DNA from: Caecitellus pseudoparvulus
Taxonomy: Eukaryota; Protista; Bigyra: Bicosoecida
DNA length: 27,287 bases
Assembly (NCBI GenBank): GCA_965644315.1
Contig: CBFFRQ010000215.1
Span: 1-27,287 of the forward strand
Reading direction: 5' to 3'
Positions 1,121 to 27,287 of this stretch are shown in pieces. The notes under the pieces were generated by a model. The model saw only the letters and a program-made list of their open reading frames with translations, had not been told where the DNA came from and did not search any database. Each line of letters starts with the position of its first letter. The first letter of the stretch is position 1. A program made the translations under genes and the position numbers.

Positions 1121-1548
1121 TCATGCATGTACGGAGCGGATATGCTTCTTGAGATTGCCAGCCTGTGTAAATGTCTTGTTACAGTGAGGGCAGTGGTGGT
1201 CTCGCGCACCCTCATGCACAGTGCGGATGTGGACCTTGAGATAACCAGCCTCGGCGAAGCTCTTGTCACAGTGCGGACAGTGGTGGTCTCGTGCGCCTTC
1301 GTGGACGGTGCGGATGTGGGTCTTGAGGCTGCCAGCCCTACCGAATGCCTTGTCACAGTGTGGGCAGTGGTAGTCTCGTGCCCCTTCATGCACGGTGCGA
1401 ATGTGGGTTTTGAGATTACCAGCCTGTCCGAATGCCTTGTCACAATGCGGGCAGTGGTGGTCTCTGGTGCCCTCGTGCACGGTGCGGATGTGCTTTGTCA
1501 GAGAGCAAGCGATGCCGAATGCCTTGCCACAGTGCGGACACTGGTGGT
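1121..1548 (-). pseudogene. ZF gene A, 3' part (fingers 12-16), separated by retrotransposon copy 1
   Basis: Five CPHCxKxFxxxxxLxxHIRxVH repeats ending HIRSVHA-TGA; rejoins 7372-9235 in frame (EGARD|HQCPHC; 2292 nt, 763 aa). Confidence 0.9.
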
Positions 1549-2034
1549 TCCCTCGTGTTGGTGCGTTGTGCGTGGCAATCGAAATGCATTGAACTGGGCC
1601 CGCCTCGAGGCCGTCCCCTCCCCCCTCTATGCCAGCGGCCACCAGGGCTCGCTGCATCTCTTGGGGGAGGGGACGCCTCCTTGCGGCACCCGCCAATCGA
1701 GAAAAAGAAAAAAAAAGGAAAGAGAGTGACGAGGCCGGCTAATGACTGGTTTTGTCATGCCCGGTCCTGCCGTCGTCTACTCTGCGTTGGGGCGGCGGGG
1801 GACAATTGTGCCACTAGCGTGGGACTGCCCGCCGCCCCTCCTGCCGGGAAACATGGTTGCCGGCTGGGGTGCCGGCAACCTCGGTTCCCTCGTGTTGGTG
1901 CGTTGTGCGTGGCAATCGAAATGCATTGAACTGGGCCCGCCTCGAGGCCGTCCCCTCCCCCCTCTATGCCAGCGGCCACCAGGGCTCGCTGCATCTCTTG
2001 GGGGAGGGGACGCCTCCTTGCGGCACCCGCCAAT
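1549..2034 (-). repeat. Copy 1 3' terminal B1-A2-B2 split direct repeats
   Basis: B1 (1886-2034) matches B2 (1549-1697); A2 (1707-1885) matches A1 (7194-7371). Confidence 0.93.
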
Positions 2035-2065
2035 ACTTTTCAATGCTTGCTTCCTCCCCTGGGTG

Positions 2066-2940
2066 TCATGGCCTCGTGCCACAGCCTCGCCCCCTCCCCC
2101 CCCCCCGGGGGGGTAGTATCGTGCCCGGGTGGGGGAGCCAGCCGCCCAGCCCGCCGCGTGCTCCACCAAGACGTCGGGGGCCCGGCCTGTCCAGAACATA
2201 TTGCCCCCGGGTCTCAGGTGGGCCAAGGACACGCCCGCTACAGCCTTCAGGATGCCTTGCAGGCTGAGCCACGCCCACCTTGGGAGCAGGCTTCCCCGCT
2301 TGTCCCGGGCCTGCTCCCGGAGGCGGTCGAAGGCCCCCGCCCACTCGGCCTGGCGCACCACCTGGATGTGGCGGTTTGCACTCAGGTGCGTTTTATCCGT
2401 GACCCTGGCCTCCACCCACTGCAGGGGGCCCGCCCGCCCGAAGTGCAACTCCTCCCATCGCAGGCCCCGGAGCTCTCCCGGCCTGCACATGCCATGAAAG
2501 CCGATGTAGATAGCTGCGGCGGCAGTTGGGGCATGCCTCCCGAGGTGTGGCCCGTCCCATGCCCGCTTCATGGCCTCCATGACTTGTTCTTTGCTGATAG
2601 GGCGGCGGTGTTGCTCCCCTCTCCCTCGGTGGAGCCGGCGGATTGCCCGGCAGATGCTGCCGACTGTGAGCCCCAGCGGGGCTAGCGACGGGATTGGCAG
2701 GCCCAGATACCTAAAACCACCGACCCATTGCGCCAGGATCTGCTTCGCCCGATGGGGGGCCCATCTGCCTGCGGCCACGCCGCCCGTTAAGATGCCCACC
2801 ATGGTCCGCGCCCTGTCCCGGGGTGCTGGAGCGGCCCTGATCAGGCCAGCAACCGCGCGAACGTACTTGACCACCGTCCCCTTTGCCAGCCTATGTTGGT
2901 GAATCCTGCTGATCGGGGACGCGGGGATGGCCCTGATCAT
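2066..2940 (-). CDS. Tyrosine recombinase, copy 1 (3' end altered in the G/C homopolymer after the catalytic Tyr)
   Basis: Same protein as 19595-20464 up to RARYY; the 387-aa ORF extension comes from homopolymer differences near 2090-2113. Confidence 0.85.
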
Positions 2941-2960
2941 CTGCCAGAAGGTCTGCTTCC

Positions 2961-5107
2961 TTATCCAGAGTGTGTCTGTGCAGGGCGACGGAGAGTTGAG
3001 CTGAGTGAATCCACGCGGTGCCCGCCCCGGCCCTTTTCCGACGGCCCTACGTCTAGGGACACATCATGCCACCGCTCAGCGGCGCTGCTTCCCCCTGCTG
3101 ATACCTCCAGCTCGGCTGGTTGCCCTGGCGGGAGGCCGAGCGCTGCCGGTGTGCTGCTATCCACCCTTTCGGGGTGGCTGAGGGCGTCCGCCCGCCAATT
3201 CAGGCTCCTCGGGATCCACCGAGGCGCCAAGTGGACGTCCAAAACGCGGGAAACCCGCTCGAGGACCCCGCAGACGCGCGTGAGTTCACGGCTGTGCTTG
3301 CTGTACCCTCGTCGCGCCAGCGCCACCGCTGCCTGGCTGTCCGCAGCTAGGCATAGCAGCAGCGGCCCCGGCTCGGGAAAAACATGCCGCGCCATTGCCA
3401 TAGCCAAGGCGATTGCGTACAGCTCCAGCATCGTGGAGGCTCCCACGAGCTCCTCGCCCGGGGCTGTGCCGGGGATGCGCATGGACGCGTACCAAGCGGA
3501 GTCTGTGCGTTCTCCTGGCCCTGCCCACCTCGACACTGTTGCCCCCAGCCCGCCTTCCCCCGACGCGTCGCACGAGCCAAAGAGGGCGGCGCGCCACCTG
3601 CTTGACAGTGGGGAGAGCGGGCGCATCGGGCCCGTCGATAACGGCCCACCGAGGGCCTCAAGGAGGGTCCGCAGGGCCCCGTGCGACGCCGGGGGGACAG
3701 GCACGAGAGCGCCGGGGGGCCGACGCGGTACTTGTGTGTGCGCATGGTGTCGTACAAGAGCGACAGCGTTTGTTTTGCGTGGGGCACCACGGCCGACAGG
3801 CCGTGCAAGCGCCCTGTGACCGCGGCGAAAACGCGCTTGGGGATGGTGGAGCAAGCGCCGAGGCGATTAAGGACCGCGGCCAGCTGCCACCGCAGCTGAG
3901 TTCGTTTGGCTTGAGGACACTCAAGGTACACCCCACACGGGGCACACCTGACCACCATCCCCAAGTACTGAACGACGCGCTGTGGCCCTTGCGTCTTCTT
4001 GCGCGACACCCGGAAGCCCACGTCCTCGAACAGTTGAGTTATCTTGGGCACGATCGATGGCCGTGGCCCCAACGTAGCTCCCCCAAGCCCGACGTCGTCT
4101 ACGTACACAACCACATGCCCTGCTGGGAACGCCGCTTCGATCTTGGCGCCCAGAAGTCCAGAAAAAAAGCAGAAAATGGCCCCGGCCGGGCTGTACCCGA
4201 AGGCCATCCGAAGCATGCGGAAGGCTGGCCTGCCCTGGGCGAGCATGGTGAACAGTCCGGCGCCCGACGGAGCGATGGGGATGGCCGTGTACCCTGCTTC
4301 CACGTCCAGGACAACACAGTCCGAGTTCGGCGGGAGGCGCAGCGCCCAGCTCTCCAGCGTGGGGTAGTGGAATGGGGGGCTCACTGAGGCCTGGTTGACG
4401 GCTGCCAGATCGTACACCACCCGCTGCTTGGCCCGGAACAGGCGGCTCGGGCGGGCGGGCGCGCGGGAAGAGCTGGCGGCCTGCACCGCCTCGCCTGGGT
4501 TCGCAGCAGCCCACTGTCGCAGAGCTTCGTCGCTGACGCCCGGCTGGGGGGCCCATGTCGTGACAACGAAGGCAGAAGCGGCTGGCCCCCCATCTTTCGG
4601 TGCTGCTGCAGCTGCTGGGGGTGACCGGCTGCAGCACGCGCGCAGCCGCGAAGGCGTCATAGGCCGCTGCCACCGCCCGCTCGTCGTGCGGCTGCAGCAC
4701 GTATGCCGAGGACGGGGATGCCGCTGCCGGGGGCGGCGGAACAGCAGCCAAGCGGGGTCCCACCCGCGCAGCGTGACCACGGTGAGCAGTCGCATGGCTG
4801 CGCACCGCTCAAGCTGCCGTAATCTGGAAGTGGTCTCGCCGCATGCGGGACACACGTCAGCGTGGGCCTCCTGGCAACCCCAGTATGAGACCACGGGGTG
4901 GGGGCCCCAGTCCAAGCCCCCACGCAAGATGTCCTCGAAGAGCCCCGGTGGAGTCCAACAACGGTCCCCATGCAGCTGCTGGACCATTGATTCGATGAGC
5001 ACGGCCATGGCGCGGTGGTCTGTCGAGAGCGGGGCGGCAGCCCTCCACTCCACGGGCACGGCCCGGTACCCCGTGGTCGCTCTCACCACCGCGCTCCGGC
5101 CCACCTC
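2961..5107 (-). pseudogene. RT-RNaseH (pol), copy 1, frameshifted
   Basis: YVDD and RNase H motifs split over frames by 1-nt homopolymer deletions relative to copy 2 (near 4730, 4620, 4590, 3720); may be sequencing error. Confidence 0.85.
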
Positions 5108-7190
5108 CTAGAGGCTGAGAGCTGCCTCCACCATGGCCGTGGTGACAGCGCGGGGCTGCATGCGCCGCTGGAAGTCACGTCCCTTGGATGCCACCTTCCG
5201 CTCCCACTGGCGCACCAGCATGGCCACTGCCTGCGCCTGGGTAAGTTCTGCGGGCTTACCTCCGACTGTGTGGGTCCGGCGCAGGTGGGCCACATGCTGG
5301 GCCAGGCGTGGGCAGGATGCCAGCGACCGGCGCCGCCGGTCGGATCCGACGCACCCGGGGCACCACACGAATGTGCTCGGGTCGTCCTGCCGGTACAGCC
5401 CCGCGGGAGGGCCACGAGCGGGGGTTTGCGCCGGGCCGCCCCCCGCACCTGGCATCGGTGTGGCGGCGGCCCCGGCCGCCCATGCCTCGCGCGCCAGCGA
5501 GCTGGCCACCAGTGCTTGCCCCGTCGCCGACGCCATCATGACAATGGTGGCGTTAGTGCGGAACGTGGCCACCCAGGAGGCCCACGTCAGCTGGGCCCAT
5601 CGCCTGCGCTGGCCTTCGGGCAACGCAGCGGCGGTCTGCGCCACGGCCCGCACTGCGATTGTGATCAGGAGTGCGCACGCCATGGCTCGGCACAGGCCCC
5701 GCTGGTCTGCCAGGGCGGGCACCTCGGACGCCCACTTCCACCAGAACGCTCGGAGGGAGCGGTGGAGGTCGTCGGAAGGCGCCGTCAGCAAGTCCCTGGT
5801 CATCGCAGCAAGCCACCAAGCGCCCCCACGGTTGCCCAGCATGTGGCATGCCGACAGGGCACCCGCCCCAGTTACTGCCACTAGATGGGTTGGGTCAACT
5901 GTAACTTCCACCCTCCCTTGCACCAGGCGTACAGCAGTCACTACGTCCATAGCGTCGTCCATCATGACCGACGCGGACGGCGGGGCTACCTCATCGCCGG
6001 GGGCTGTGAGCCAGGACGGGTCGCCGGGAGCGGGCACGCGGGGCGAGTGGGGGGGGAGCTGGCGGGACAGGAACGTACCTGACGGCACTGGGCCCGTTGC
6101 TGCGGGCACCTCTCGTGCAGCAGCCTCAGCCATCTCGACAGCCACCGTGGTCAAGGCGTCTGTGGTCCCCGCAGCGAAAACTGCCCCCAAGGCTGACAGG
6201 CGGTCCCGGGCCACCGCCGACGAGGGGTGTGCGGTCGGCCCAATGACCCGCAGCGCGCCTACAGTGACCAGTACCTCGTCGGCTGGCGACGACCGACCGC
6301 TGTTCTCCCCCATGTGACCGAAAACAGCCGACCCGCCTTCGGGGTGGACTGCCGGCGAGGCTCCGCCGCCCCACGGGGGAGGGGGGCTGCGGGCTATAGG
6401 CCGCCCTGTGCCTCTTGGAGGCCGGGGGGTGACCCGGGGCCGCCGCACGGGGCTGTAACCGGGCGGCATCCGGTGTGGTGCCCGGGAAAACGGGAAAGAA
6501 CGGGGCGCCGGCATCGTCGTCGCCAAAGTCGTCGTCGCCCGCCAGCGCGGCCTCCAGGACCCGCTGCAAATGCATCACGATGTCGTCGGGGGTGAGGTCG
6601 GGGGGAATACCGTTGAGTCTGCACCATGCGGCGAAGCGCCGTGGAGGCCAAGCGGAGAGGGCGTACGGCGATGTCTCCTCCGTTGCCAAGCCCACGTAGA
6701 ACTGCAGCTGCACGGCGACGTCCTCGCTCGGCACCGTCGCTCCCCTCTGCAGGAACCACGTAAGCACTGTGGCGGGATCTTGCGGGAGGTCGCCTGCGAC
6801 TGCGTCCGGCTGGGTCGGGCGCGGGGGTAGGTGCGGGCCGTAGGGCGTGCCACTGCTCGCACCGCGCGGACGGGTTCGCTTCGTGCCGTGCCCCCGTGGT
6901 GAGCCGCCTGCGCGATGAGGGGCACCGTCAGCGGGGAGGCGGAAAGCTCTGCCCGCAATGAGGGATCGCATGCGATCTGCCCGGAATCCCTCGGGCACCT
7001 CCCGGAGGCGCCAAGCGGCCTCCATCTTACCAAAATCCTCAGAATCCGCCCACTTCAGCCAGTACTCGAACTCCTGCTCCGTTATGAGCGCCTTGGCTTG
7101 CTTGGCGGAGTTGACAGACATCATTTTGTCGTGGATGTCCTCCCAGCTTCCGCCCTCCGTGTCGCTGGAAGCTGGATCATCCGATGCCAT
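5108..7190 (-). CDS. Gag-like ORF1, copy 1 (two frames joined at a C-run near 6375-6386)
   Basis: ATG directly after A1; same translation as copy 2; gag assignment is positional only. Confidence 0.65.
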
Positions 7191-7193
7191 CTC

Positions 7194-7371
7194 GAAAAAA
7201 AAGGAAAGAGAGTGACGAGGCCGGCTAATGACTGGTTTTGTCATGCCCGGTCCTGCCGTCGTCTACTCTGCGTTGGGGCGGCGGGGGACAATTGTGCCAC
7301 TAGCGTGGGACTGCCCGCCGCCCCTCCTGCCGGGAAACATGGTTGCCGGCTGGGGTGCCGGCAACCTCGGT
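7194..7371 (-). repeat. Copy 1 5' terminal repeat A1
   Basis: 178 bp, matches A2 at 1707-1885. Confidence 0.93.
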
Positions 7372-9235
7372 CTCGTGCACCCTCGTGCACGGTGCGGATG
7401 TGCCTCTTGAGACTGCCAGCCTCGCCGAAGCTCTTGTCACAGTGTGGGCAGTGGTGGTCTCGCGCACCCTCGTGCACAGTGCGGATGTGTGCCTTGAGAT
7501 TACAAGCCGTGCCGAATGCCTTGTCACAGTGTGGGCAGTGGTGGTCTCGTGCGCCTTCATGGACGGTGCGGATGTGGGTTTTGAGATCACCAGCCGTGCC
7601 AAACGCCTTCTCACAGTGTGGGCAGTGGTGGTCTCTCGCGCCCTCATGCACTGTGCGGATGTGGACCTTCAGATTGCCAGCCGTGCCAAACGCCTTGTCA
7701 CAGTGTGGGCAGTGGTGGTCTCTGGCGCCCTCGTGCACGGTGCGGATGTGGGTCTTGAGGCTGCCAGACTCGCTGAAGGCCTTGTCACAGTGCGGGCAGT
7801 GGTAGTCCCGTGCACCTTCATGCACGGTGCGGATGTGCTTCTTGAGGTGACCAGCCGTGCCAAAGGCCTTGTCACAGTGCGGGCAGTGGTGGTCTCGCGC
7901 ATCCTCATGGACGGCGCGGATGTGTCTCTTGAGGCTGCCAGCCTGTGTAAATGCCTTGTCACAGTGCGGGCAGTGGTGGTCTTGGACACCCTCATGGACG
8001 GTGCGGATGTGGGTTTTGAGATTACCAACCTGCCCGAAGCTCTTGTCACAGTGTGGGCAGTGGTATTCCCGTGCACCTTCATGCACGGTGCGGATGTGCT
8101 TCCTGAGGCTGCCAGCCTCGCCGAACGTCTTGTCACAGTGCGGGCAGTGGTGGTCTCTGGCGCCCTCATGGACGGTGCGGATGTGTTTCCTGAGGCTGCC
8201 AGCCTCGCCGAAGGCCTTGTCACAGTGTGGACAGTGGTGGTCTCTGGCACCCTCATGGACAGTACGGACGTGGGTCTTGAGATTGCCAGGCTTGCTGAAG
8301 CTCTTCCCACACACAATGCACACCACTCGACCACCCGCACCTGCCCCCCCATGACACTCACGCCTGTGCTCCTCCACAGCGCCCCACGACCCCAACACCA
8401 CATCGCACAGCATGCACCGAGGCACGCCTTGCACACGCGCTCCCGCGCCTCGCCCCACATCTGCCCTCGCCGCCCCAGCCACCTCGCCCTCGCCCTCGCC
8501 ACGCGGCACGCTCACTCCCACATCGCCCAGTGCGTCGTCCCCGCGTCCATTGCCGTCACGGGTGCCGCTGTCCACCTCCTCACATGACACCGTGCTGCCA
8601 CTGTCACTGCTGTCACTGCCGTCGCTGTCGCTGCCGTCACTGTCCCACTCGCTGTCACTGCTGTGCCTCCCGTCGCCACCACCGCCGCTGCACTCCTCGG
8701 CCCCACCCACATCCACACCTACACACCCTCTCGCCCCCCACTCCTCACAGCTGCTCGACCCCCCACTGCTCGTCACCGTCAACCCGCCACAACTTGCTCC
8801 GCCACACCGACCACCACCGACCACACCGACCACACCCACCTTCCACAGTACCATGTCCGCCACCGTCCCCGCACGCCACTGGGCAGACCATGACGGCAGC
8901 TCACCCTGCAGTGCCGCGACGCCCGTGCGCGTCACGTCCTCCAACCGCTCCACCTGCGCCGCTGACTCTCCACACACCTCGCCACCACGCCCTGCGCCCA
9001 CGCTCTGACCGTCGCCACACAACGCGCCCCCACTACACCCCGTCACACCACCCGGCGCCTCGCCAGCACACGCTGCGCCACACTTCCTCTTGCAGGGACT
9101 GGTCTGGCCTCCCGCCAGCCTGCGCTTCGCGCCCCCCACGGCGCTCACCCTGCCCGCTTGCGTTGCAGGCGCTGCGCCGTGCCTCAAACTGCGCCGGCAC
9201 GCCACGCCGGGCTGCCTCGTGCCCACGCAGCTCAT
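7372..9235 (-). pseudogene. ZF gene A, 5' part (N-terminal low-complexity region, one isolated finger, tandem fingers 1-11)
   Basis: CCACC-ATG start (MSCVGTRQPG); 11 tandem 29-aa C2H2 fingers; frame runs into A1 and stops at 7241. Confidence 0.9.
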
Positions 9236-9667
9236 GGTGGGAGTGGGGGGGGGGCAGCAGTGTGCAGTTTGTCTGGTGTGTTGCATGTGATGTGAGCAGT
9301 GTGTGGTTGGGAAGTAGTGTGCGGGGGGAAGTGTGGGGGGGGGTGTGGCAGGAGAGACTCGTCGGCGAGCTGCTCAGGCTGCACTCTCGACTCCACACGC
9401 CCACGCCCCAAGCCGCCATTGCCTCCACGCCCCCACATCACACACGGCCACCTGCACGCCAACCGCCCACGAGCATGCTGCCGTGCATGGCCTGCGCCTG
9501 GCTGCATCGCGGCGCACAGTGGACTGCCCTGATCACGGGCCCGTCCCCCAGCAGCACCCGCAACGCCGGCCGCGTTTCCACGGCGTTTCCTCACACCCAT
9601 CCACAGCCCACCCGCACACCCCGCGCACACTGACCACACGCCACACACCCCACTCACACATCTGGGC

Positions 9668-13224: not shown

Positions 13225-13250
13225 GTTGGTGTGCATTGTGGGCGTAGTGG

Positions 13251-15337: not shown

Positions 15338-15340
15338 GAG

Positions 15341-17423: not shown

Positions 17424-19574
17424 GAGGTGGGCCGGAGCGCGGTGGTGAGAGCGACCACGGGGTACCGGGCCGTGCCCGTGGAGTGGAGGGCTGCCGCCCC
17501 GCTCTCGACAGACCACCGCGCCATGGCCGTGCTCATCGAATCAATGGTCCAGCAGCTGCATGGGGACCGTTGTTGGACTCCACCGGGGCTCTTCGAGGAC
17601 ATCTTGCGTGGGGGCTTGGACTGGGGCCCCCACCCCGTGGTCTCATACTGGGGTTGCCAGGAGGCCCACGCTGACGTGTGTCCCGCATGCGGCGAGACCA
17701 CTTCCAGATTACGGCAGCTTGAGCGGTGCGCAGCCATGCGACTGCTCACCGTGGTCACGCTGCGCGGGTGGGACCCCGCTTGGCTGCTGTTCCGCCGCCC
17801 CCCGGCAGCGGCATCCCCGTCCTCGGCATACGTGCTGCAGCCGCACGACGAGCGGGCGGTGGCAGCGGCCTATGACGCCTTCGCGGCTGCGCGCGTGCTG
17901 CAGCCGGTCACCCCCCAGCAGCTGCAGCAGCACCGAAAGATGGGGGGGCCAGCCGCTTCTGCCTTCGTTGTCACGACATGGGCCCCCCAGCCGGGCGTCA
18001 GCGACGAAGCTCTGCGACAGTGGGCTGCTGCGAACCCAGGCGAGGCGGTGCAGGCCGCCAGCTCTTCCCGCGCGCCCGCCCGCCCGAGCCGCCTGTTCCG
18101 GGCCAAGCAGCGGGTGGTGTACGATCTGGCAGCCGTCAACCAGGCCTCAGTGAGCCCCCCATTCCACTACCCCACGCTGGAGAGCTGGGCGCTGCGCCTC
18201 CCGCCGAACTCGGACTGTGTTGTCCTGGACGTGGAAGCAGGGTACACGGCCATCCCCATCGCTCCGTCGGGCGCCGGACTGTTCACCATGCTCGCCCAGG
18301 GCAGGCCAGCCTTCCGCATGCTTCGGATGGCCTTCGGGTACAGCCCGGCCGGGGCCATTTTCTGCTTTTTTTCTGGACTTCTGGGCGCCAAGATCGAAGC
18401 GGCGTTCCCAGCAGGGCATGTGGTTGTGTACGTAGACGACGTCGGGCTTGGGGGAGCTACGTTGGGGCCACGGCCATCGATCGTGCCCAAGATAACTCAA
18501 CTGTTCGAGGACGTGGGCTTCCGGGTGTCGCGCAAGAAGACGCAAGGGCCACAGCGCGTCGTTCAGTACTTGGGGATGGTGGTCAGGTGTGCCCCGTGTG
18601 GGGTGTACCTTGAGTGTCCTCAAGCCAAACGAACTCAGCTGCGGTGGCAGCTGGCCGCGGTCCTTAATCGCCTCGGCGCTTGCTCCACCATCCCCAAGCG
18701 CGTTTTCGCCGCGGTCACAGGGCGCTTGCACGGCCTGTCGGCCGTGGTGCCCCACGCAAAACAAACGCTGTCGCTCTTGTACGACACCATGCGCACACAC
18801 AAGTACCGCGTCGGCCCCCCCGGCGCTCTCGTGCCTGTCCCCCCGGCGTCGCACGGGGCCCTGCGGACCCTCCTTGAGGCCCTCGGTGGGCCGTTATCGA
18901 CGGGCCCGATGCGCCCGCTCTCCCCACTGTCAAGCAGGTGGCGCGCCGCCCTCTTTGGCTCGTGCGACGCGTCGGGGGAAGGCGGGCTGGGGGCAACAGT
19001 GTCGAGGTGGGCAGGGCCAGGAGAACGCACAGACTCCGCTTGGTACGCGTCCATGCGCATCCCCGGCACAGCCCCGGGCGAGGAGCTCGTGGGAGCCTCC
19101 ACGATGCTGGAGCTGTACGCAATCGCCTTGGCTATGGCAATGGCGCGGCATGTTTTTCCCGAGCCGGGGCCGCTGCTGCTATGCCTAGCTGCGGACAGCC
19201 AGGCAGCGGTGGCGCTGGCGCGACGAGGGTACAGCAAGCACAGCCGTGAACTCACGCGCGTCTGCGGGGTCCTCGAGCGGGTTTCCCGCGTTTTGGACGT
19301 CCACTTGGCGCCTCGGTGGATCCCGAGGAGCCTGAATTGGCGGGCGGACGCCCTCAGCCACCCCGAAAGGGTGGATAGCAGCACACCGGCAGCGCTCGGC
19401 CTCCCGCCAGGGCAACCAGCCGAGCTGGAGGTATCAGCAGGGGGAAGCAGCGCCGCTGAGCGGTGGCATGATGTGTCCCTAGACGTAGGGCCGTCGGAAA
19501 AGGGCCGGGGCGGGCACCGCGTGGATTCACTCAGCTCAACTCTCCGTCGCCCTGCACAGACACACTCTGGATAA
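17424..19574 (+). CDS. Reverse transcriptase-RNase H (DIRS/Ngaro-type pol)
   Basis: RT motifs RVVYDL, VLDVEAGYTAIPI, MAFGYSPA, VYVDD, GFRVSRKKT, YLGM; RNase H motifs CDAS, MLELYA, ADSQAA, NWRADALS. In frame with ORF1; first own ATG at 17523. Confidence 0.95.
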   Translation, partial: EVGRSAVVRATTGYRAVPVEWRAAAPLSTDHRAMAVLIESMVQQLHGDRCWTPPGLFEDILRGGLDWGPHPVVSYWGCQEAHADVCPACGETTSRLRQLERCAAMRLLTVVTLRGWDPAWLLFRRPPAAASPSSAYVLQPHDERAVAAAYDAFAAARVLQPVTPQQLQQHRKMGGPAASAFVVTTWAPQPGVSDEALRQWAAANPGEAVQAASSSRAPARPSRLFRAKQRVVYDLAAVNQASVSPPFHYPTLESWALRLPPNSDCVVLDVEAGYTAIPIAPSGAGLFTMLAQGRPAFRMLRMAFGYSPAGAIFCFFSGLLGAKIEAAFPAGHVVVYVDDVGLGGATLGPRPSIVPKITQLFEDVGFRVSRKKTQGPQRVVQYLGMVVRCAPCGVYLECPQAKRTQLRWQLAAVLNRLGACSTIPKRVFAAVTGRLHGLSAVVPHAKQTLSLLYDTMRTHKYRVGPPGALVPVPPASHGALRTLLEALGGPLSTGPMRPLSPLSSRWRAALFGSCDASGEGGLGATVSRWAGPGERTDSAWYASMRIPGTAPGEELVGASTMLELYAIALAMAMARHVFPEPGPLLLCLAADSQAAVALARRGYSKHSRELTRVCGVLERVSRVLDVHLAPRWIPRSLNWRADALSHPERVDSSTPAALGLPPGQPAELEVSAGGSSAAERWHDVSLDVGPSEKGRGGHRVDSLSSTLRRPAQTHSG

Positions 19575-19594
19575 GGAAGCAGACCTTCTGGCAG

Positions 19595-20464
19595 ATGATC
19601 AGGGCCATCCCCGCGTCCCCGATCAGCAGGATTCACCAACATAGGCTGGCAAAGGGGACGGTGGTCAAGTACGTTCGCGCGGTTGCTGGCCTGATCAGGG
19701 CCGCTCCAGCACCCCGGGACAGGGCGCGGACCATGGTGGGCATCTTAACGGGCGGCGTGGCCGCAGGCAGATGGGCCCCCCATCGGGCGAAGCAGATCCT
19801 GGCGCAATGGGTCGGTGGTTTTAGGTATCTGGGCCTGCCAATCCCGTCGCTAGCCCCGCTGGGGCTCACAGTCGGCAGCATCTGCCGGGCAATCCGCCGG
19901 CTCCACCGAGGGAGAGGGGAGCAACACCGCCGCCCTATCAGCAAAGAACAAGTCATGGAGGCCATGAAGCGGGCATGGGACGGGCCACACCTCGGGAGGC
20001 ATGCCCCAACTGCCGCCGCAGCTATCTACATCGGCTTTCATGGCATGTGCAGGCCGGGAGAGCTCCGGGGCCTGCGATGGGAGGAGTTGCACTTCGGGCG
20101 GGCGGGCCCCCTGCAGTGGGTGGAGGCCAGGGTCACGGATAAAACGCACCTGAGTGCAAACCGCCACATCCAGGTGGTGCGCCAGGCCGAGTGGGCGGGG
20201 GCCTTCGACCGCCTCCGGGAGCAGGCCCGGGACAAGCGGGGAAGCCTGCTCCCAAGGTGGGCGTGGCTCAGCCTGCAAGGCATCCTGAAGGCTGTAGCGG
20301 GCGTGTCCTTGGCCCACCTGAGACCCGGGGGCAATATGTTCTGGACAGGCCGGGCCCCCGACGTCTTGGTGGAGCACGCGGCGGGCTGGGCGGCTGGCTC
20401 CCCCACCCGGGCACGATACTACACCCAGGGGGGGAGGGGGCGAGGCTGTGGCACGAGGCCATGA
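19595..20464 (+). CDS. Tyrosine recombinase (289 aa)
   Basis: GFHGMCRPGEL (Arg), TDKT (Lys), AHLRPGG (HxxR box variant), AGW...RARYY (Trp, catalytic Tyr). Confidence 0.9.
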   Translation: MIRAIPASPISRIHQHRLAKGTVVKYVRAVAGLIRAAPAPRDRARTMVGILTGGVAAGRWAPHRAKQILAQWVGGFRYLGLPIPSLAPLGLTVGSICRAIRRLHRGRGEQHRRPISKEQVMEAMKRAWDGPHLGRHAPTAAAAIYIGFHGMCRPGELRGLRWEELHFGRAGPLQWVEARVTDKTHLSANRHIQVVRQAEWAGAFDRLREQARDKRGSLLPRWAWLSLQGILKAVAGVSLAHLRPGGNMFWTGRAPDVLVEHAAGWAAGSPTRARYYTQGGRGRGCGTRP

Positions 20465-20495
20465 CACCCAGGGGAGGAAGCAAGCATTGAAAAGT

Positions 20496-20981
20496 ATTGG
20501 CGGGTGCCGCAAGGAGGCGTCCCCTCCCCCAAGAGATGCAGCGAGCCCTGGTGGCCGCTGGCATAGAGGGGGGAGGGGACGGCCTCGAGGCGGGCCCAGT
20601 TCAATGCATTTCGATTGCCACGCACAACGCACCAACACGAGGGAACCGAGGTTGCCGGCACCCCAGCCGGCAACCATGTTTCCCGGCAGGAGGGGCGGCG
20701 GGCAGTCCCACGCTAGTGGCACAATTGTCCCCCGCCGCCCCAACGCAGAGTAGACGACGGCAGGACCGGGCATGACAAAACCAGTCATTAGCCGGCCTCG
20801 TCACTCTCTTTCCTTTTTTTTTCTTTTTCTCGATTGGCGGGTGCCGCAAGGAGGCGTCCCCTCCCCCAAGAGATGCAGCGAGCCCTGGTGGCCGCTGGCA
20901 TAGAGGGGGGAGGGGACGGCCTCGAGGCGGGCCCAGTTCAATGCATTTCGATTGCCACGCACAACGCACCAACACGAGGGA
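20496..20981 (+). repeat. Copy 2 3' terminal B1 (20496-20644), A2 (20645-20823), B2 (20833-20981)
   Basis: B1 and B2 are matching 149-bp direct repeats; the B1-A2 junction GAGGGA|ACCGAGG equals the expected circle junction. Confidence 0.95.
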
Positions 20982-21477
20982 AACGCCCACGCCCACACAC
21001 CCTCCCGCCCCCCACTCCCCACAGCTGCTCGACCCCCCACTGCTCGTCACCGTCAACCCGCCGCAGCTCGCTCCACCACTCCGACCACCACCGACCACAC
21101 CCACCACACCCACCTTCCGCAGTGCCACGCCCTCACCCGTCCCCGCACGCCCCTGTGCACACCATGACGGCAGCTCACCCTGCACTGCCGCGACCCCCGC
21201 GCGCGTCATGCCCCCCAACCGCCCCACCTGTGCCGCTGACTCTCCACACACCTCACCACCACGCTCTGCGCCCACGCACTGACCGTCGCCACACAACGCG
21301 CCCCCACTACACCCCGCCACCACACCCGGCGCCTCGCCACCACACGCTGTGCCACACTTCCTCTTGCAGGGACTGGTCTGGCCTCCCGCCAGCCTGCGCT
21401 TCGCGCCCCCCACGGCGCTCACCCTGCCCGCTTGCCTTGCAGGCGCTGCGCCGTGCCTAAAACTGCGCGGGCACGCC
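20982..21477 (-). pseudogene. Fragment of a fourth, more diverged ZF paralogue (N-terminal region only) between copies 2 and 3
   Basis: Homologous to ~8710-9203 and ~14667-15159 with many substitutions (e.g. GGMTRAGVAAVQGELPSWCAQ). Confidence 0.88.
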
Positions 21478-21658
21478 ACCGTGTTTGCCGGCACCCCAGC
21501 CGGAAACATTGTTTCCGGGCTGGTGGGGGGGGGGGCAGTCCCACGATTGTGGAAAAATTGACCCCCGCCGCCCCAACGCAGAGTAGACGACGGCAGGACC
21601 GGGCATGACAAAACCAGTCATTAGCCGGCCTCGTCACTCTCTTTCCTTTTTTTTCGAG

Positions 21659-23738
21659 ATGGCATCGGATGATCCAGCTTCCAGCGACACGGAGGGCGGA
21701 AGCTGGGAGGACATCCACGACAAAATGATGTTCTGTCAACTCCGCCAAGCAAGCCAAGGCGCTCATAACGGAGCAGGAGTTCGAGTACTGGCTGAAGTGG
21801 GCGGATTCTGAGGATTTTGGTAAGATGGAGGCCGCTTGGCGCCTCCGGGAGGTGCCCGAGGGATTCCGGGCAGATCGCATGCGATCCCTCATTGCGGGCA
21901 GAGCTTTCCGCCTCCCCGCTGACGGTGCCCCTCATCGCGCAGGCGGCTCACCACGGGGGCACGGCACGAAGCGAACCCGTCCGCGCGGTGCGAGCAGTGG
22001 CACGCCCTACGGCCCGCACCTACCCCCGCGCCCGACCCAGCCGGACGCAGTCGCAGGCGACCTCCCGCAAGATCCCGCCACAGTGCTTACGTGGTTCCTG
22101 CAGAGGGGAGCGACGGTGCCGAGCGAGGACGTCGCCGTGCAGCTGCAGTTCTACGTGGGCTTGGCAACGGAGGAGACATCGCCGTACGCCCTCTCCGCTT
22201 GGCCTCCACGGCGCTTCGCCGCATGGTGCAGACTCAACGGTATTCCCCCCGACCTCACCCCCGACGACATCGTGATGCATTTGCAGCGGGTCCTGGAGGC
22301 CGCGCTGGCGGGCGACGACGACTTTGGCGACGACGATGCCGGCGCCCCGTTCTTTCCCGTTTTCCCGGGCACCACACCGGATGCCGCCCGGTTACAGCCC
22401 CGTGCGGCGGCCCCGGGTCACCCCCCGGCCTCCAAGAGGCACAGGGCGGCCTATAGCCCGCAGCCCCCCTCCCCGTGGGGCGGCGGAGCCTCGCCGGCAG
22501 TCCACCCCGAAGGCGGGTCGGCTGTTTTCGGTCACATGGGGGAGAACAGCGGTCGGTCGTCGCCAGCCGACGAGGTACTGGTCACTGTAGGCGCGCTGCG
22601 GGTCATTGGGCCGACCGCACACCCCTCGTCGGCGGTGGCCCGGGACCGCCTGTCAGCCTTGGGGGCAGTTTTCGCTGCGGGGACCACAGACGCCTTGACC
22701 ACGGTGGCTGTCGAGATGGCTGAGGCTGCTGCACGAGAGGTGCCCGCAGCAACGGGCCCAGTGCCGTCAGGTACGTTCCTGTCCCGCCAGCTCCCCCACT
22801 CGCCCCGCGTGCCCGCTCCCGGCGACCCGTCCTGGCTCACAGCCCCCGGCGATGAGGTAGCCCCGCCGTCCGCGTCGGTCATGATGGACGACGCTATGGA
22901 CGTAGTGACTGCTGTACGCCTGGTGCAAGGGAGGGTGGAAGTTACAGTTGACCCAACCCATCTAGTGGCAGTAACTGGGGCGGGTGCCCTGTCGGCATGC
23001 CACATGCTGGGCAACCGTGGGGGCGCTTGGTGGCTTGCTGCGATGACCAGGGACTTGCTGACGGCGCCTTCCGACGACCTCCACCGCTCCCTCCGAGCGT
23101 TCTGGTGGAAGTGGGCGTCCGAGGTGCCCGCCCTGGCAGACCAGCGGGGCCTGTGCCGAGCCATGGCGTGCGCACTCCTGATCACAATCGCAGTGCGGGC
23201 CGTGGCGCAGACCGCCGCTGCGTTGCCCGAAGGCCAGCGCAGGCGATGGGCCCAGCTGACGTGGGCCTCCTGGGTGGCCACGTTCCGCACTAACGCCACC
23301 ATTGTCATGATGGCGTCGGCGACGGGGCAAGCACTGGTGGCCAGCTCGCTGGCGCGCGAGGCATGGGCGGCCGGGGCCGCCGCCACACCGATGCCAGGTG
23401 CGGGGGCGGCCCGGCGCAAACCCCCGCTCGTGGCCCTCCCCGCGGGGCTGTGCCGGCAGGACGACCCGAGCACATTCGTGTGGTGCCCCGGGTGCGTCGG
23501 ATCCGACCGGCGGCGCCGGTCGCTGGCATCCTGCCCACGCCTGGCCCAGCATGTGGCCCACCTGCGCCGGACCCACACAGTCGGAGGTAAGCCCGCAGAA
23601 CTTACCCAGGCGCAGGCAGTGGCCATGCTGGTGCGCCAGTGGGAGCGGAAGGTGGCATCCAAGGGACGTGACTTCCAGCGGCGCATGCAGCCCCGCGCTG
23701 TCACCACGGCCATGGTGGAGGCAGCTCTCAGCCTCTAG
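21659..23738 (+). CDS. Gag-like ORF1, copy 3 (1-nt insertion near 21731, otherwise one frame)
   Basis: The 637-aa ORF 21825-23738 fuses the two frames seen in copies 1 and 2. Confidence 0.65.
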
Positions 23739-25887
23739 GAGGTGGGCCGGAGCGCGGTGGTGAGAGCGACCACGGGGTACCGGGCCGTGCCCGTGGAGTG
23801 GAGGGCTGCCGCCCCGCTCTCGACAGACCACCGCGCCATGGCCGTGCTCATCGAATCAATGGTCCAGCAGCTGCATGGGGACCGTTGTTGGACTCCACCG
23901 GGGCTCTTCGAGGACATCTTGCGTGGGGGCTTGGACTGGGGCCCCCACCCCGTGGTCTCATACTGGGGTTGCCAGGAGGCCCACGCTGACGTGTGTCCCG
24001 CATGCGGCGAGACCACTTCCAGATTACGGCAGCTTGAGCGGTGCGCAGCCATGCGACTGCTCACCGTGGTCACGCTGCGCGGGTGGGACCCCGCTTGGCT
24101 GCTGTTCCGCCGCCCCCGGCAGCGGCATCCCCGTCCTCGGCATACGTGCTGCAGCCGCACGACGAGCGGGCGGGGGCAGCGGCCTATGACGCCTTCGCGG
24201 CTGCGCGCGTGCTGCAGCCGGTCACCCCCCAGCAGCTGCAGCAGCACCGAAAGATGGGGGGCCAGCCGCTTCTGCCTTCGTTGTCACGACATGGGCCCCC
24301 CAGCCGGGCGTCAGCGACGAAGCTCTGCGACAGTGGGCTGCTGCGAACCCAGGCGAGGCGGTGCAGGCCGCCAGCTCTTCCCGCGCGCCCGCCCGCCCGA
24401 GCCGCCTGTTCCGGGCCAAGCAGCGGGTGGTGTACGATCTGGCAGCCGTCAACCAGGCCTCAGTGAGCCCCCCATTCCACTACCCCACGCTGGAGAGCTG
24501 GGCGCTGCGCCTCCCGCCGAACTCGGACTGTGTTGTCCTGGACGTGGAAGCAGGGTACACGGCCATCCCCATCGCTCCGTCGGGCGCCGGACTGTTCACC
24601 ATGCTCGCCCAGGGCAGGCCAGCCTTCCGCATGCTCTCGGATGGCCTTCGGGTACAGCCCGGCCGGGGCCATTTTCTGCTTTTTGTCTGGACTTCTGGGC
24701 GCCAAGATCGAAGCGGCGTTCCCAGCAGGGCATGTGGTTGTGTACGTAGACGACGTCGGGCTTGGGGGAGCTACGTTGGGGCCACGGCCATCGATCGTGC
24801 CCAAGATAACTCAACTGTTCGAGGACGTGGGCTTCCGGGTGTCGCGCAAGAAGACGCAAGGGCCACAGCGCGTCGTTCAGTACTTGGGGATGGTGGTCAG
24901 GTGTGCCCCGTGTGGGGTGTACCTTGAGTGTCCTCAAGCCAAACGAACTCAGCTGCGGTGGCAGCTGGCCGCGGTCCTTAATCGCCTCGGCGCTTGCTCC
25001 ACCATCCCCAAGCGCGTTTTCGCCGCGGTCACAGGGCGCTTGCACGGCCTGTCGGCCGTGGTGCCCCACGCAAAACAAACGCTGTCGCTCTTGTACGACA
25101 CCATGCGCACACACAAGTACCGCGTCGGCCCCCCCGGCGCCTCGTGCCTGTCCCCCCGGCGTCGCACGGGGCCCTGCGGACCCTCCTTGAGGCCCTCGGT
25201 GGGCCGTTATCGACGGGCCCGATGCGCCCGCTCTCCCCACTGTCAAGCAGGTGGCGCGCCGCCCTCTTTGGCTCGTGCGACGCGTCGGGGGAAGGCGGGC
25301 TGGGGGCAACAGTGTCGAGGTGGGCAGGGCCAGGAGAACGCACAGACTCCGCTTGGTACGCGTCCATGCGCATCCCCGGCACAGCCCCGGGCGAGGAGCT
25401 CGTGGGAGCCTCCACGATGCTGGAGCTGTACGCAATCGCCTTGGCTATGGCAATGGCGCGGCATGTTTTTCCCGAGCCGGGGCCGCTGCTGCTATGCCTA
25501 GCTGCGGACAGCCAGGCAGCGGTGGCGCTGGCGCGACGAGGGTACAGCAAGCACAGCCGTGAACTCACGCGCGTCTGCGGGGTCCTCGAGCGGGTTTCCC
25601 CGCGTTTTGGACGTCCACTTGGCGCCTCGGTGGATCCCGAGGAGCCCGAATTGGCGGGCGGACGCCCTCAGCCACCCCGAAAGGGTGGATAGCAGCACAC
25701 CGGCAGCGCTCGGCCTCCCGCCAGGGCAACCAGCCGAGCTGGAGGTATCAGCAGGGGGAAGCAGCGCCGCTGAGCGGTGGCATGATGTGTCCCTAGACGT
25801 AGGGCCGTCGGGAAAGGCCGGGGCGGGCACCGCGTGGATTCACTCAGCTCAACTCTCCGTCGCCCTGCACAGACACACTCTGGATAA
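23739..25887 (+). pseudogene. RT-RNaseH, copy 3, several 1-nt frameshifts
   Basis: Same motifs as copy 2 spread across frames; indels near 24115, 24258, 24636, 25141, 25600, 25813. Confidence 0.85.
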
Positions 25888-25907
25888 GGAAGCAGACCTT
25901 CTGGCAG

Positions 25908-26780
25908 ATGATCAGGGCCATCCCCGCGTCCCCGATCAGCAGGATTCACCAACATAGGCTGGCAAAGGGGACGGTGGTCAAGTACGTTCGCGCGGTTGCT
26001 GGCCTGATCAGGGCCGCTCCAGCACCCCGGGACAGGGCGCGGACCATGGTGGGCATCTTAACGGGCGGCGTGGCCGCAGGCAGATGGGCCCCCCATCGGG
26101 CGAAGCAGATCCTGGCGCAATGGGTCGGTGGTTTTAGGTATCTGGGCCTGCCAATCCCGTCGCTAGCCCCGCTGGGGCTCACAGTCGGCAGCATCTGCCG
26201 GGCAATCCGCCGGCTCCACCGAGGGAGAGGGGAGCAACACCGCCGCCCTATCAGCAAAGAACAAGTCATGGAGGCCATGAAGCGGGCATGGGACGGGCCA
26301 CACCTCGGGAGGCATGCCCCAACTGCCGCCGCAGCTATCTACATCGGCTTTCATGGCATGTGCAGGCCGGGAGAGCTCCGGGGCCTGCGATGGGAGGAGT
26401 TGCACTTCGGGCGGGCGGGCCCCCTGCAGTGGGTGGAGGCCAGGGTCACGGATAAAACGCACCTGAGTGCAAACCGCCACATCCAGGTGGTGCGCCAGGC
26501 CGAGTGGGCGGGGGCCTTCGACCGCCTCCGGGAGCAGGCCCGGGACAAGCGGGGAAGCCTGCTCCCAAGGTGGGCGTGGCTCAGCCTGCAAGGCATCCTG
26601 AAGGCTGTAGCGGGCGTGTCCTTGGCCCACCTGAGACCCGGGGGCAATATGTTCTGGACAGGCCGGGCCCCCGACGTCTTGGTGGAGCACGCGGCGGGCT
26701 GGGCGGCTGGCTCCCCCACCCGGGCACGATACTACACCCAGGGGGGGGGGAGGGGGCGAGGCTGTGGCACGAGGCCATGA
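25908..26780 (+). CDS. Tyrosine recombinase, copy 3 (290 aa)
   Basis: Identical to copy 2 apart from one extra Gly in the G-run. Confidence 0.9.
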   Translation: MIRAIPASPISRIHQHRLAKGTVVKYVRAVAGLIRAAPAPRDRARTMVGILTGGVAAGRWAPHRAKQILAQWVGGFRYLGLPIPSLAPLGLTVGSICRAIRRLHRGRGEQHRRPISKEQVMEAMKRAWDGPHLGRHAPTAAAAIYIGFHGMCRPGELRGLRWEELHFGRAGPLQWVEARVTDKTHLSANRHIQVVRQAEWAGAFDRLREQARDKRGSLLPRWAWLSLQGILKAVAGVSLAHLRPGGNMFWTGRAPDVLVEHAAGWAAGSPTRARYYTQGGGRGRGCGTRP

Positions 26781-26811
26781 CACCCAGGGGAGGAAGCAAG
26801 CATTGAAAAGT

Positions 26812-27287
26812 ATTGGCGGGTGCCGCAAGGAGGCGTCCCCTCCCCCAAGAGATGCAGCGAGCCCTGGTGGCCGCTGGCATAGAGGGGGGAGGGGACGGCC
26901 TCGAGGCGGGCCCAGTTCAATGCATTTCGATTGCCACGCACAACGCACCAACACGAGGGAACCGAGGTTGCCGGCACCCCAGCCGGCAACCATGTTTCCC
27001 GGCAGGAGGGGCGGCGGGCAGTCCCACGCTAGTGGCACAATTGTCCCCCGCCGCCCCAACGCAGAGTAGACGACGGCAGGACCGGGCATGACAAAACCAG
27101 TCATTAGCCGGCCTCGTCACTCTCTTTCCTTTTTTTTTCTTTTTCTCGATTGGCGGGTGCCGCAAGGAGGCGTCCCCTCCCCCAAGAGATGCAGCGAGCC
27201 CTGGTGGCCGCTGGCATAGAGGGGAGGGGACGGCCTCGAGGCGGGCCCAGTTCAATGCATTTCGATTGCCACGCACAACGCACCAAC
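26812..27287 (+). repeat. Copy 3 3' terminal B1-A2-B2 (truncated by window edge)
   Basis: Matches 20496-20973. Confidence 0.93.

Follow-up and report, generated by a model that had tools for sequence, protein, structure and literature searches.

In the 27,287-nt stretch of DNA analysed here (the window; Table 1), BLAST alignment shows a 5,823-bp element in three near-identical copies, which interrupt a tandem array of poly-C2H2 zinc-finger (ZF) genes with units of about 3 kb. The explanation we favour, at about even chances, is that a young Ngaro-type tyrosine recombinase (YR) retrotransposon entered this array at least three times, probably four, through a preference for a short sequence combined with regional reinsertion and with the tolerance that gene redundancy allows. 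The element belongs to a known kind (Ngaro-type).

Table 1. Features of the ZF gene array and of the three element copies in the window.
Feature	Position	Strand	Description
ZF unit 1, 3' part	1121-1548	minus	last fingers and stop codon; Pfam zf-C2H2
Element copy 1	1549-7371	minus	5,823 bp; same orientation as the ZF gene
B2, copy 1	1549-1697		followed by an 11-nt spacer
A2, copy 1	1709-1885
B1, copy 1	1883-2034
A1, copy 1	7195-7371
ZF unit 1, 5' part	7372-9235	minus	N-terminal acidic low-complexity region and first 12 fingers; empty site P at 9203/9204
ZF unit 2	10173-12308	minus	sole uninterrupted paralogue; 711 aa, 16 fingers; empty site P at 12276/12277
ZF unit 3	13251-15159	minus	13 fingers; copy 2 at site P severs the first ~11 codons and the upstream region
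Element copy 2	15160-20981	plus	5,822 bp; antisense to the ZF genes
A1, copy 2	15160-15336	plus	177 nt
Palindrome	15166-15189		perfect, 9 bp, 6-nt spacer; inside A1 of copy 2
gag-position ORF, copy 2	15287-17423	plus
RT/RNase H ORF, copy 2	17427-19574	plus	715 aa
YR ORF, copy 2	19595-20464	plus	289 aa
B1, copy 2	20496-20647	plus
A2, copy 2	20645-20821	plus	followed by an 11-nt spacer
B2, copy 2	20833-20981	plus
ZF unit 4 fragment	20982-21477	minus	only the N-terminal stretch, from site Q to site P
Transversion patch	21459-21561		17 substitutions; spans the unit 4/copy 3 junction
Element copy 3	21478-27287	plus	at site P of unit 4; window ends 8 nt short of the 3' end
Element termini			5' start ACCGAGGTTGCC; 3' end CACGAGGGA

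The first-pass annotation had recognised tandem poly-ZF genes in this stretch, and the analysis bears this out: each unit ORF, on the minus strand, encodes 13-17 C2H2 fingers with a length of 29 aa (87 nt) (Pfam zf-C2H2, E 1e-54 to 1e-74), and the variability falls mainly on the residues that contact DNA. Across 44 fingers, the entropy amounts to 2.58, 2.43 and 2.27 bits at helix positions -1, 3 and 6, and every other finger position but one stays at or below 1.3 bits. Besides, the N-terminal coding stretch is 89-96% identical among units as against 97% for the intergenic spacers, i.e., the coding sequence is the more diverged of the two. The array is one of rapidly diversifying poly-C2H2 ZF genes of a GC-rich marine eukaryote, and tandem poly-ZF genes with hypervariable contact residues are thereby known to exist in a GC-rich marine protist. 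Pfam returned only ZF families for these proteins and no repressor or effector domain, and a search with the N-terminal 330 aa of the ZF protein gave no homologue beyond its first fingers. These observations bear on the idea of an arms race, in which the array would encode repressors recognising the repeats of the element, and insertions knocking them out would be favoured. A peak of variability at the three helix positions (2.3-2.6 bits) and the stronger divergence of the coding N-terminal stretch, both as in fast-evolving DNA-binding arrays, would fit such a conflict, but with no detectable effector domain, an N-terminal region without homologue, and a selection for disrupting repressors that is hard to sustain at a low element copy number, we regard it as highly improbable.

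All five junctions between element and host (1548/1549, 7371/7372, 15159/15160, 20981/20982 and 21477/21478) lie exactly where the first-pass annotation had put them, and its count of three disrupted paralogues out of four, at three sites and in both orientations, stands, as unit 2 alone is uninterrupted. The accompanying statement that the junctions fall in ZF coding sequence holds for the site of copy 1; i.e., unit 1 is cut inside a finger linker, the 87-nt register is kept across the insertion, and excising exactly 5,823 bp rebuilds a single ORF of 17 fingers. At the two other sites, here called P and Q, the sequence is putatively coding, judged from a long N-terminal ORF; the indels among units around P and Q are all multiples of 3, and the break in unit 3 falls ~11 codons past the first conserved ATG. 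A target-site duplication is absent: the flanks of copy 1 are contiguous, and only a 3-nt ACC is common to the start of the element and the 3' flank.

The element is built as A1-ORFs-B1A2-B2, i.e., with split direct repeats of which the internal pair lies downstream of the YR gene. A measures 177 nt and B 152 nt, each pair is 100% identical, B1 and A2 share 3 nt, and a gap of 11 nt separates A2 from B2. The overlap of B1 and A2 would give a circle junction ...GGGA/ACC... (the slash marks the point of joining here and below). The palindrome inside A1 was considered as the crossover site and rejected, since the host/element boundaries lie 7-16 nt upstream of the palindrome spacer. Rfam and tRNA scans returned no matches.

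Three ORFs follow one another between the repeats. The first is named gag-like by position only, because Pfam, fold (low confidence, pLDDT 47) and structure searches gave no match; a poly-C tract near 16150 splits it in copies 1 and 2 (in copy 2 into 15287-16405 and 16005-17423), and it is unbroken in copy 3 (21825-23738) and in Logan contig L013. The second matches Pfam RVT_1 (E 1.6e-7, 31.7 bits at a cut-off of 29.6) and contains a YVDD box that is invariant across 12 relatives. It is followed by an RNase H-type pattern at the level of sequence (DAS...E...DS...N..AD.LS), in which D514, E562, D590 and D641 are invariant in the 12 relatives, and the ORF gave no RNase H match in Pfam at E<=1. 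The third ORF encodes a Cre-like YR, which takes the place of a DDE integrase. Residues R153, E156, K183, R243, W265 and Y276 are invariant in seven relatives, the YR profile matches Cre weakly, and the top 31 Foldseek matches of an AF2 model of moderate quality (pLDDT 69.8, catalytic C-terminus <50) consist solely of Cre and Cre-derived Tre chains (best E 6e-6), with Flp, Xer and TelA ranking next. The YR ORF has no Pfam match of its own, and no integrase family was matched in any ORF scanned. A methyltransferase family was absent from every ORF in Pfam, and the element has no room for one, because the pol ORF stops ~70 aa past the RNase H motif and the YR ORF begins 20 nt later.

Classed by its repeat layout and domain content, the element is a Ngaro-type YR retrotransposon. 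The proposal of a Ngaro-like element made from the sequence at first sight is thus upheld by the split direct repeats, the RT, the Cre-like YR, and the absence of both a methyltransferase and a target-site duplication. A PAT-like affiliation was rejected (direct split repeats are present, the methyltransferase is absent), as was a DIRS1-like one (the terminal repeats are direct, and there is no terminal inverted pair within any copy).

The youth of the element, likewise proposed earlier, is borne out by the lack of clean substitutions between copies 1 and 2, by terminal and internal repeats that are 100% identical, and by the occurrence of the same element at ~99% identity in several marine metagenomes, where the RT and YR ORFs are open. 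The earlier description of copies that differ almost only by homopolymer indels applies to copy 1 versus copy 2 (zero clean substitutions) and fails for copy 3, which has 15 substitutions within its first 84 nt, ~5 further on, and several indels outside homopolymers. Private homopolymer deletions disrupt the RT ORF of copy 1, and private indels disrupt that of copy 3, whose gag-position ORF is a single frame. Gene conversion among elements could imitate youth. The ENA/Logan contigs with the 99%-identical element (L001, L003, L011-L013) are internal fragments or repeat-collapsed paths without junctions. A search with the 5'-terminal 22-mer gave no hits in the JGI metagenomes or in IMG/VR; a single match of 22-24 nt in an Acidobacteriota MAG of GTDB was taken as chance. 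The RT protein had no match in IMG/VR, which was searched for virophage-borne copies. The nearest relatives in the databases are environmental sequences of at most 46% identity.

The junctions 15159/15160 and 21477/21478 represent one homologous site, P; in units 3 and 4 it was entered at exactly the same base with the element facing the same way, and it is empty in units 1 and 2. With independent, uniform insertion into a unit of ~3,073 bp, the same base and orientation would be met by chance in about 1 in 6,000 cases. The host flanks of copies 2 and 3 are 89% identical and the elements >99%, which speaks against one old insertion that was duplicated together with its unit; that scenario was rejected on these figures, and also since exchange cannot create the junction between the element and Q. 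Copy 2 has the site P of unit 3 as its left flank and the site Q of unit 4 as its right flank. These do not adjoin in a unit and ~2.6 kb of host sequence is missing between them; copy 2 therefore results from recombination, from a deletion or from a misjoin.

Clustering in the region after one founding insertion, without preference for sequence or gene, would be another way to arrive at such a pattern, either through YR-mediated recombination into or next to resident copies, local reinsertion and unequal exchange, or through residence in a TE-tolerant, silenced region. Copies 2 and 3 share their orientation and are separated by 496 bp, the flanks of copy 2 need recombination or deletion, adjacent Ngaro pairs are on record in Cafeteria, and DIRS-1 forms clusters that are credited to its YR (PMC5633606). 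However, homologous exchange between units can neither yield a junction between the 3' end of the element and Q nor put an element at P of a second unit with a 10% diverged flank, and copy 1 is a clean simple insertion at an unrelated site and in the opposite orientation. We consider such clustering rather improbable.

Part of the arrangement could be a misassembly, because the junction of unit 4 with copy 3 falls in a low-quality patch and the flanks of copy 2 are non-adjoining. The substitutions in the stretch 21459-21561 are all transversions, many of them lengthening homopolymers, and this is probably a low-quality stretch of the assembly; the 15 transversions that copy 3 carries within its initial 84 nt have the look of sequencing errors. 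The indel states of copy 2 match five independent short-read metagenome contigs at most variable positions, and those of copies 1 and 3 disagree with the short-read contigs. The part of the repeated-insertion picture that involves copies 2 and 3 could be a recombination product or an assembly misjoin. An artefact in the wider sense would mean that identical 5.8-kb repeats were misjoined and that copy 2, the unit 4 fragment and copy 3 do not follow each other as drawn, with fewer insertions in the array or with junctions brought together from different loci. The homopolymer-biased patch across a junction and the separated flanks of copy 2 would agree with this, as would copy differences that are mostly homopolymer lengths, the conflict of copies 1 and 3 with short-read data, and a window end that falls inside copy 3. 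On the other hand, the unit 4 fragment is a true paralogue rather than a second copy of unit 3, because it is 89-92% identical to units 1-3 and its transitions outnumber its transversions; copy 1 is clean at both junctions, and even a chimeric path would imply real junctions of P with the element and of the element with Q somewhere in ZF units. We regard the artefact as very unlikely.

The two target sites that can be resolved, P and the site of copy 1, have GCACGNN/AC in common, which points to a preference for a short sequence; with the recurrent use of P, this is the sole sign of specificity inside the window. This motif was defined post hoc from two fully resolvable sites, and agreement at 7 of the 9 positions has a chance of ~0.004 if a per-base match of ~0.3 is assumed. 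The identity between target and the junction of the B end with the A start is limited to 2-3 nt (AC or ACC). The target motif as the cause of a bias towards ZF genes was rejected: CACGNNAC has a density of 1.6/kb in the finger arrays versus 2.1/kb in the intergenic spacers, and because it is no commoner in the former, the motif alone does not account for insertions that are all in ORFs. The restriction of the motif to two sites, the position of the unit 4/copy 3 junction in the low-quality patch, and the distance between the flanks of copy 2 are points against our favoured explanation.

True homing to ZF genes would be a genome-wide preference for poly-ZF genes, with the redundant family as a safe harbour; the cue would be either the finger-linker DNA, which is repeated, or the chromatin of these clusters. 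All four inferred events (copy 1, P of unit 3, P of unit 4 and Q of unit 4) fall in ZF ORFs within ~10 kb of host sequence, the target of copy 1 lies in linker codons, which recur once per finger, and nine further GCACGNNAC sites are all in ORFs, with none in 2.9 kb of spacer; strong preferences for target classes are also known for the Ngaro types of Cafeteria (PMC8547959). Yet ORFs make up ~70% of the unit (2,136/3,073 bp), and the chance expectation is p ~0.23-0.34 (~0.34 for three sites all in ORFs). This lies within chance, as anticipated by the caveat in the first-pass annotation that, with ~70% ZF exons, the window alone cannot prove targeting. Besides, the N-terminal region outside the fingers holds two of the three sites, and only 6 of the ~44 fingers contain the motif. 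Of four related elements whose flanks are visible, none is in a ZF gene; their neighbours are EGF-like or unknown ORFs, a sulfate permease and an LRR gene. A C2H2 array was found in none of the 39 loci fetched. We hold such homing to be rather unlikely. That the recombinase seeks out a short motif within coding sequence of a hypervariable poly-ZF family, and that the element uses this redundant family of putative repressors as a landing pad and perhaps erodes it, in a KRAB-independent parallel to the conflict of ZF proteins with transposons in vertebrates, seems to us distinctly unlikely; the homing and arms-race readings are both speculation.

Under the explanation that we favour, i.e., repeated entry guided by a short sequence, an RNA copy of the element would be reverse-transcribed, with the internal B1A2 junction serving as template for complete ends or for a circle junction, and the Cre-like recombinase would exchange strands with a target that is short and loosely defined in sequence. 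The clustering would reflect this sequence preference, YR-mediated reinsertion or recombination near resident copies, and tolerated hits in redundant paralogues, and it need not mean that ZF genes as such are recognised. Clustering of YR elements by recombination into existing copies has a precedent (PMC5633606). Copy 2 would probably have arisen from recombination that joined an insertion at P in unit 3 with one at Q in unit 4, or alternatively from an adjacent deletion mediated by the recombinase, and either route loses the ~2.6 kb of host sequence.

To our knowledge, almost nothing is known about the target choice of YR retrotransposons, and apart from the Cafeteria Ngaros with their preference for virophages, clean junctions that can be compared with an empty site are few. 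In the present array, one and the same site can be seen empty and filled, to the exact base, in paralogues; together with the crossover core of 2-3 nt and a candidate upstream motif, this makes the target rules of the recombinase testable. If the association with ZF genes were genome-wide, it would be the first known case of a retroelement homing into a family of DNA-binding genes.

The host array resembles the KRAB-ZFP clusters of vertebrates in its tandem poly-C2H2 genes, variable finger number (13-17) and hypervariable contact residues, but its genes lack KRAB, SCAN, BTB or any other effector domain, and its 29-aa fingers have an H-x4-H spacing and belong to a protist. As for the element, its direct split repeats and the lack of a methyltransferase set it apart from DIRS-1 of Dictyostelium, in which the terminal repeats are inverted and accompanied by an internal complementary region and a methyltransferase-like domain. 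DIRS-1 is also a YR retrotransposon found in clusters, which have been attributed to YR-mediated recombination into resident copies (PMC5633606). With the Ngaro superfamily of zebrafish, sea urchin and fungi (PMC4157794) it shares the lack of a methyltransferase and a YR that replaces the DDE integrase. A close comparison is with Ngaro types 1-4 of Cafeteria burkhardae, which have type-specific integration preferences (Hackl et al. 2021, eLife; PMC8547959). Their full-length copies measure 6.0-6.9 kb as against 5,823 bp here (compared by description), and among the 80 copies listed none equals our element in length and none lies on a contig with two others. The RNase H and YR of the Cafeteria elements are reported to match Pfam PF17919 and PF00589, neither of which was detected here by Pfam, and their preferred targets are endogenous virophages or general host DNA, with no mention of ZF genes; the word "zinc" does not occur in the supplement of that paper (PMC8547959). 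Both share the A1-[ORFs]-B1A2B2 layout and the gene order of gag-position ORF, RT with putative RNase H, and YR, a GC-rich sequence of ~6 kb, a marine protist as host, and near-identical copies with adjacent insertions.

The repeated occurrence of a young tyrosine-recombinase (YR) retrotransposon inside a tandem array of poly-C2H2 zinc-finger (ZF) genes, as described in the first-pass annotation, is a real observation that had been accurately read, and the coordinates of its five element/host junctions were exact. The three copies (c1 to c3), found by BLAST of c1 against the window and by a repeat scan, are listed together with the parts of the element in the table. The G+C content is 61-71% all along the window, and all sequence outside the copies belongs to a tandem array that repeats every ~2.9-3.1 kb. 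The most interesting solid result is that one exact insertion site is found both empty and filled in paralogous genes of this array, and this pair comes with a crossover identity of 2-3 nt and a candidate upstream motif.

Copies of the element in the window and parts of the element in coding orientation (coordinates of c2)
Feature	Position	Strand	Length	Remark
c1	1549-7371	minus	5,823 bp	
c2	15160-20981	plus	5,822 bp	
c3	21478-27287	plus		3' end lost: window stops 8 nt short
A1 repeat	15160-15336	plus	177 nt	
gag-position ORF	15287-16405 and 16005-17423	plus		two overlapping frames in c1 and c2
RT/RNase H ORF	17427-19574	plus	715 aa	
YR ORF	19595-20464	plus	289 aa	
B1 repeat	20496-20647	plus	152 nt	
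A2 repeat	20645-20821	plus		3-nt overlap with B1
Spacer A2-B2	20822-20832	plus	11 nt	
B2 repeat	20833-20981	plus		

The target of c1 is a finger linker (host GCACGAG, element, host ACCACC) without target duplication, and removing exactly 5,823 bp gives a 17-finger ORF again. The sole bases shared by the start of the element and the 3' flank are ACC, a pattern which is what would be left by a conservative crossover inside a 3-nt identity. The overlap of B1 and A2 gives the junction expected of a joined or circular copy, i.e., ...GGGA|ACC... Both c2 and c3 start directly after host GCACGCC, at a position that is empty in unit 1 (9203/9204) and unit 2 (12276/12277) of the array, where the host continues with ACG and the identity is 2 nt (AC). 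The pattern GCACGNN|AC is common to both fully resolvable targets; it was defined after the fact and from two sites only, and agreement at 7 of 9 positions would arise by chance with an estimated probability of ~0.004.

The junctions 15159/15160 and 21477/21478, missed as a pair in the first reading, are one homologous site (site P) in two paralogous units and in the same orientation. A single old insertion copied along with the unit is unlikely, because the host DNA next to c2 and c3 is 89% identical (33 transitions vs 20 transversions) while the elements are >99% identical. Two independent integrations may have struck the same base, which has a probability of ~1 in 6,000 when integration within a unit is uniform; otherwise, gene conversion or misassembly had a part in it. 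Across the junction between unit 4 and c3, the last 19 nt of the host flank and the first 84 nt of c3 (21459-21561) carry 17 substitutions relative to the other units and copies. All are transversions, many of them lengthening homopolymers (e.g., GGGGCGGCGGGC to a G-run), and this is probably a low-quality, poorly polished stretch of the long-read assembly rather than biological divergence.

Moreover, c2 is no simple insertion, which had also been missed. On the left it adjoins site P of unit 3; on the right (20982 onward) it adjoins a second point in the N-terminal region of the ZF units (site Q), homologous to 8708 in unit 1 and 11838 in unit 2. Site Q lies ~500 bp from P, on the wrong side of P for a simple insertion, and ~2.6 kb of host DNA is absent between the flanks. 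Homologous exchange between units is unable to make the junction of the element 3' end with Q. There are three ways in which c2 might have arisen: recombination between elements after a fourth insertion had taken place at Q; joining of the element end to a pseudo-site by the recombinase, in line with the ACGCC present in both right flanks (ACGCC at P, A-ACGCC at Q); or an assembler jump between identical copies. Part of the pattern of repeated insertion may hence be a recombination product or an assembly artefact.

The claim that the copies differ almost only by homopolymer indels held for c1 and c2, which differ at four homopolymer tracts and one C/G-run only, and failed for c3, which opens with the patch of transversions. 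The same element, with ~99% identity, is present in five independent short-read metagenome contigs (ENA ZHEN20-1, SAMN07748060, SAMN07748062; Logan SRR8404393, SRR8404394, SRR6144761). The reads of SRR8404393 and SRR8404394 are cruise data deposited for a study of 'the deepest oceans' (PMC7265257), and a study of the Challenger Deep cites the two runs as well. The metagenome contigs match c2 at nearly all indel positions, and because they side with c2, the private indels that break the RT ORFs of c1 and c3 may be genuine or erroneous. A poly-C tract in the gag-position ORF, near c2 position 992 (window ~16150 in c2, ~6380 in c1, ~22470 in c3), reads C6TC5 in c1 and c2 and C6TC4 in c3; the metagenome contigs L003 and L013 have C8TC5 there, and the ORF is split in c1 and c2 only. 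Sequencing error, true variation and a slippery site are all possible causes of this difference. Overall, the reading of the element as young and Ngaro-like is borne out: it adds a young member to the Ngaros, in a GC-rich marine eukaryote.

By BLAST, neither the two A repeats nor the two B repeats differ from each other within c1 or within c2 (100% identity). The RT ORF matches Pfam RVT_1 (E 1.6e-7), and 12 relatives all share its YVDD box and the four acidic residues that form an RNase H-type pattern; Pfam found no RNase H in it. The YR ORF had zero Pfam matches even at E<=10; R153, E156, K183, R243, W265 and Y276, which correspond to the catalytic set of Cre, are unchanged in seven relatives, and a profile of these sequences weakly matches Cre (E 0.013). 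In a Foldseek search of the PDB with its AlphaFold model (pLDDT 69.8), the top 31 matches were all Cre or Cre-derived Tre chains (best E 6e-6), followed by Flp, Xer, TelA and integron integrase. Since the catalytic C-terminus is poorly predicted, it is mainly the first 240 residues, together with the motifs, that support the fold assignment. Pfam detected no methyltransferase domain in the element ORFs, and the element has no room for one. By the structural definitions summarised in PMC4157794, the element is of Ngaro type: PAT-like elements require the methyltransferase and DIRS1-like elements inverted repeats, both lacking here.

Located 7 nt inside the A repeat (15166-15189, and likewise in A2 of each copy) is a perfect 9-bp palindrome with 6 nt between its arms, and an extended hairpin has the B-end GGGA paired at its base. 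In shape the palindrome resembles a recombinase core site, but it lies away from the observed crossover, and the overall fold z-score is only -1.8. Two Cys/His clusters invariant across relatives may be zinc-binding motifs, one at the N-terminus of the pol ORF (17427-19574, residues 81-101: H81, C85, C88, C101) and one near the C-terminus of the gag-position ORF (21825-23738, residues 554-570: C554, C557, C570).

Every host unit has one long minus-strand ORF. Its N-terminal ~250-300 aa are acidic and of low complexity, and after them come 13-17 C2H2 fingers, each 29 aa long (C-x2-C-x12-H-x4-H; Pfam zf-C2H2 E 1e-54 to 1e-74). Pfam found no effector domain in these ORFs, and the N-terminal region had no homologue among 5.8 billion proteins. 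Indels between units in this region (6, 9 and 48 nt) are all multiples of three, which supports its reading as coding. It is 89-96% identical between units, vs 97% for the non-coding intergenic spacers of ~940 bp (9236-10172, 12309-13250, with 1-747 as a further one); together with the varying finger number, this indicates that the coding part evolves faster. Among 44 fingers, the positions equivalent to helix -1, 3 and 6 have entropies of 2.58, 2.43 and 2.27 bits, and all others but one stay at <=1.3 bits. The units bear, in their sequence, the signature of a fast-evolving DNA-binding family.

The caveat that the window alone cannot prove targeting of ZF genes was well placed: because ORFs make up 70% of the unit, three or four insertions would all fall in ORFs by chance with p ~0.23-0.34. 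The motif CACGNNAC is equally frequent in spacers and finger arrays, and the longer GCACGNNAC has nine further occurrences, all in ORFs, a weak signal (p ~0.05). Searches of JGI metagenomes, IMG/VR and GTDB gave no further junctions of this family outside the window. The RT lineage is rare and unannotated (310 matches at E<=1e-3, 23 at E<=1e-30, among 1.84 billion representatives), and most relatives are on element-sized contigs of 5.4-6.4 kb (L005-L009, L016-L033), one of which (L005) has a 141-nt terminal overlap, i.e., a circular path; repeat collapse, tandem copies and extrachromosomal circles might each explain such contigs. Four relatives have visible flanks, adjoining unknown and EGF-like ORFs (L004), a sulfate-permease gene (L010 and L022, one locus) or an LRR-repeat gene (L028), and a C2H2 array is absent from all 39 fetched loci of relatives. 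Relatives only 30-46% identical say little on the preference of this family itself, beyond showing that a ZF association is no trait of the lineage. ZF-gene homing or an arms race as the explanation of these insertions is speculation.

The relative on L028 (5859-7430; 30-32% RT identity, clean A1...B1A2B2 repeats) stops 15 nt short of an ORF whose very start consists of 24-aa leucine-rich repeats, and it may also lie inside a tandem-repeat coding gene. L010 (4753-12662) and L022 (1-7910), which come from separate metagenome collections, are identical over 7.9 kb of host DNA carrying BK-channel and sulfate-permease genes and then run on into related elements along differing paths, which points to two elements, or a nested arrangement, at this single locus.

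Among the Ngaros of Cafeteria, 0 of 80 tabulated copies match the window element in length or arrangement and, unlike here, ZF genes are nowhere concerned (PMC8547959). Their type-specific integration preferences, for virophage or host DNA, have been tentatively ascribed to ORF1 (PMC8547959). They do share with the window element the architecture, the size of ~6 kb, the near-identical copies and the adjacent insertions, and for DIRS-1 it has long been proposed that YR elements cluster by recombining into copies already present (PMC5633606).
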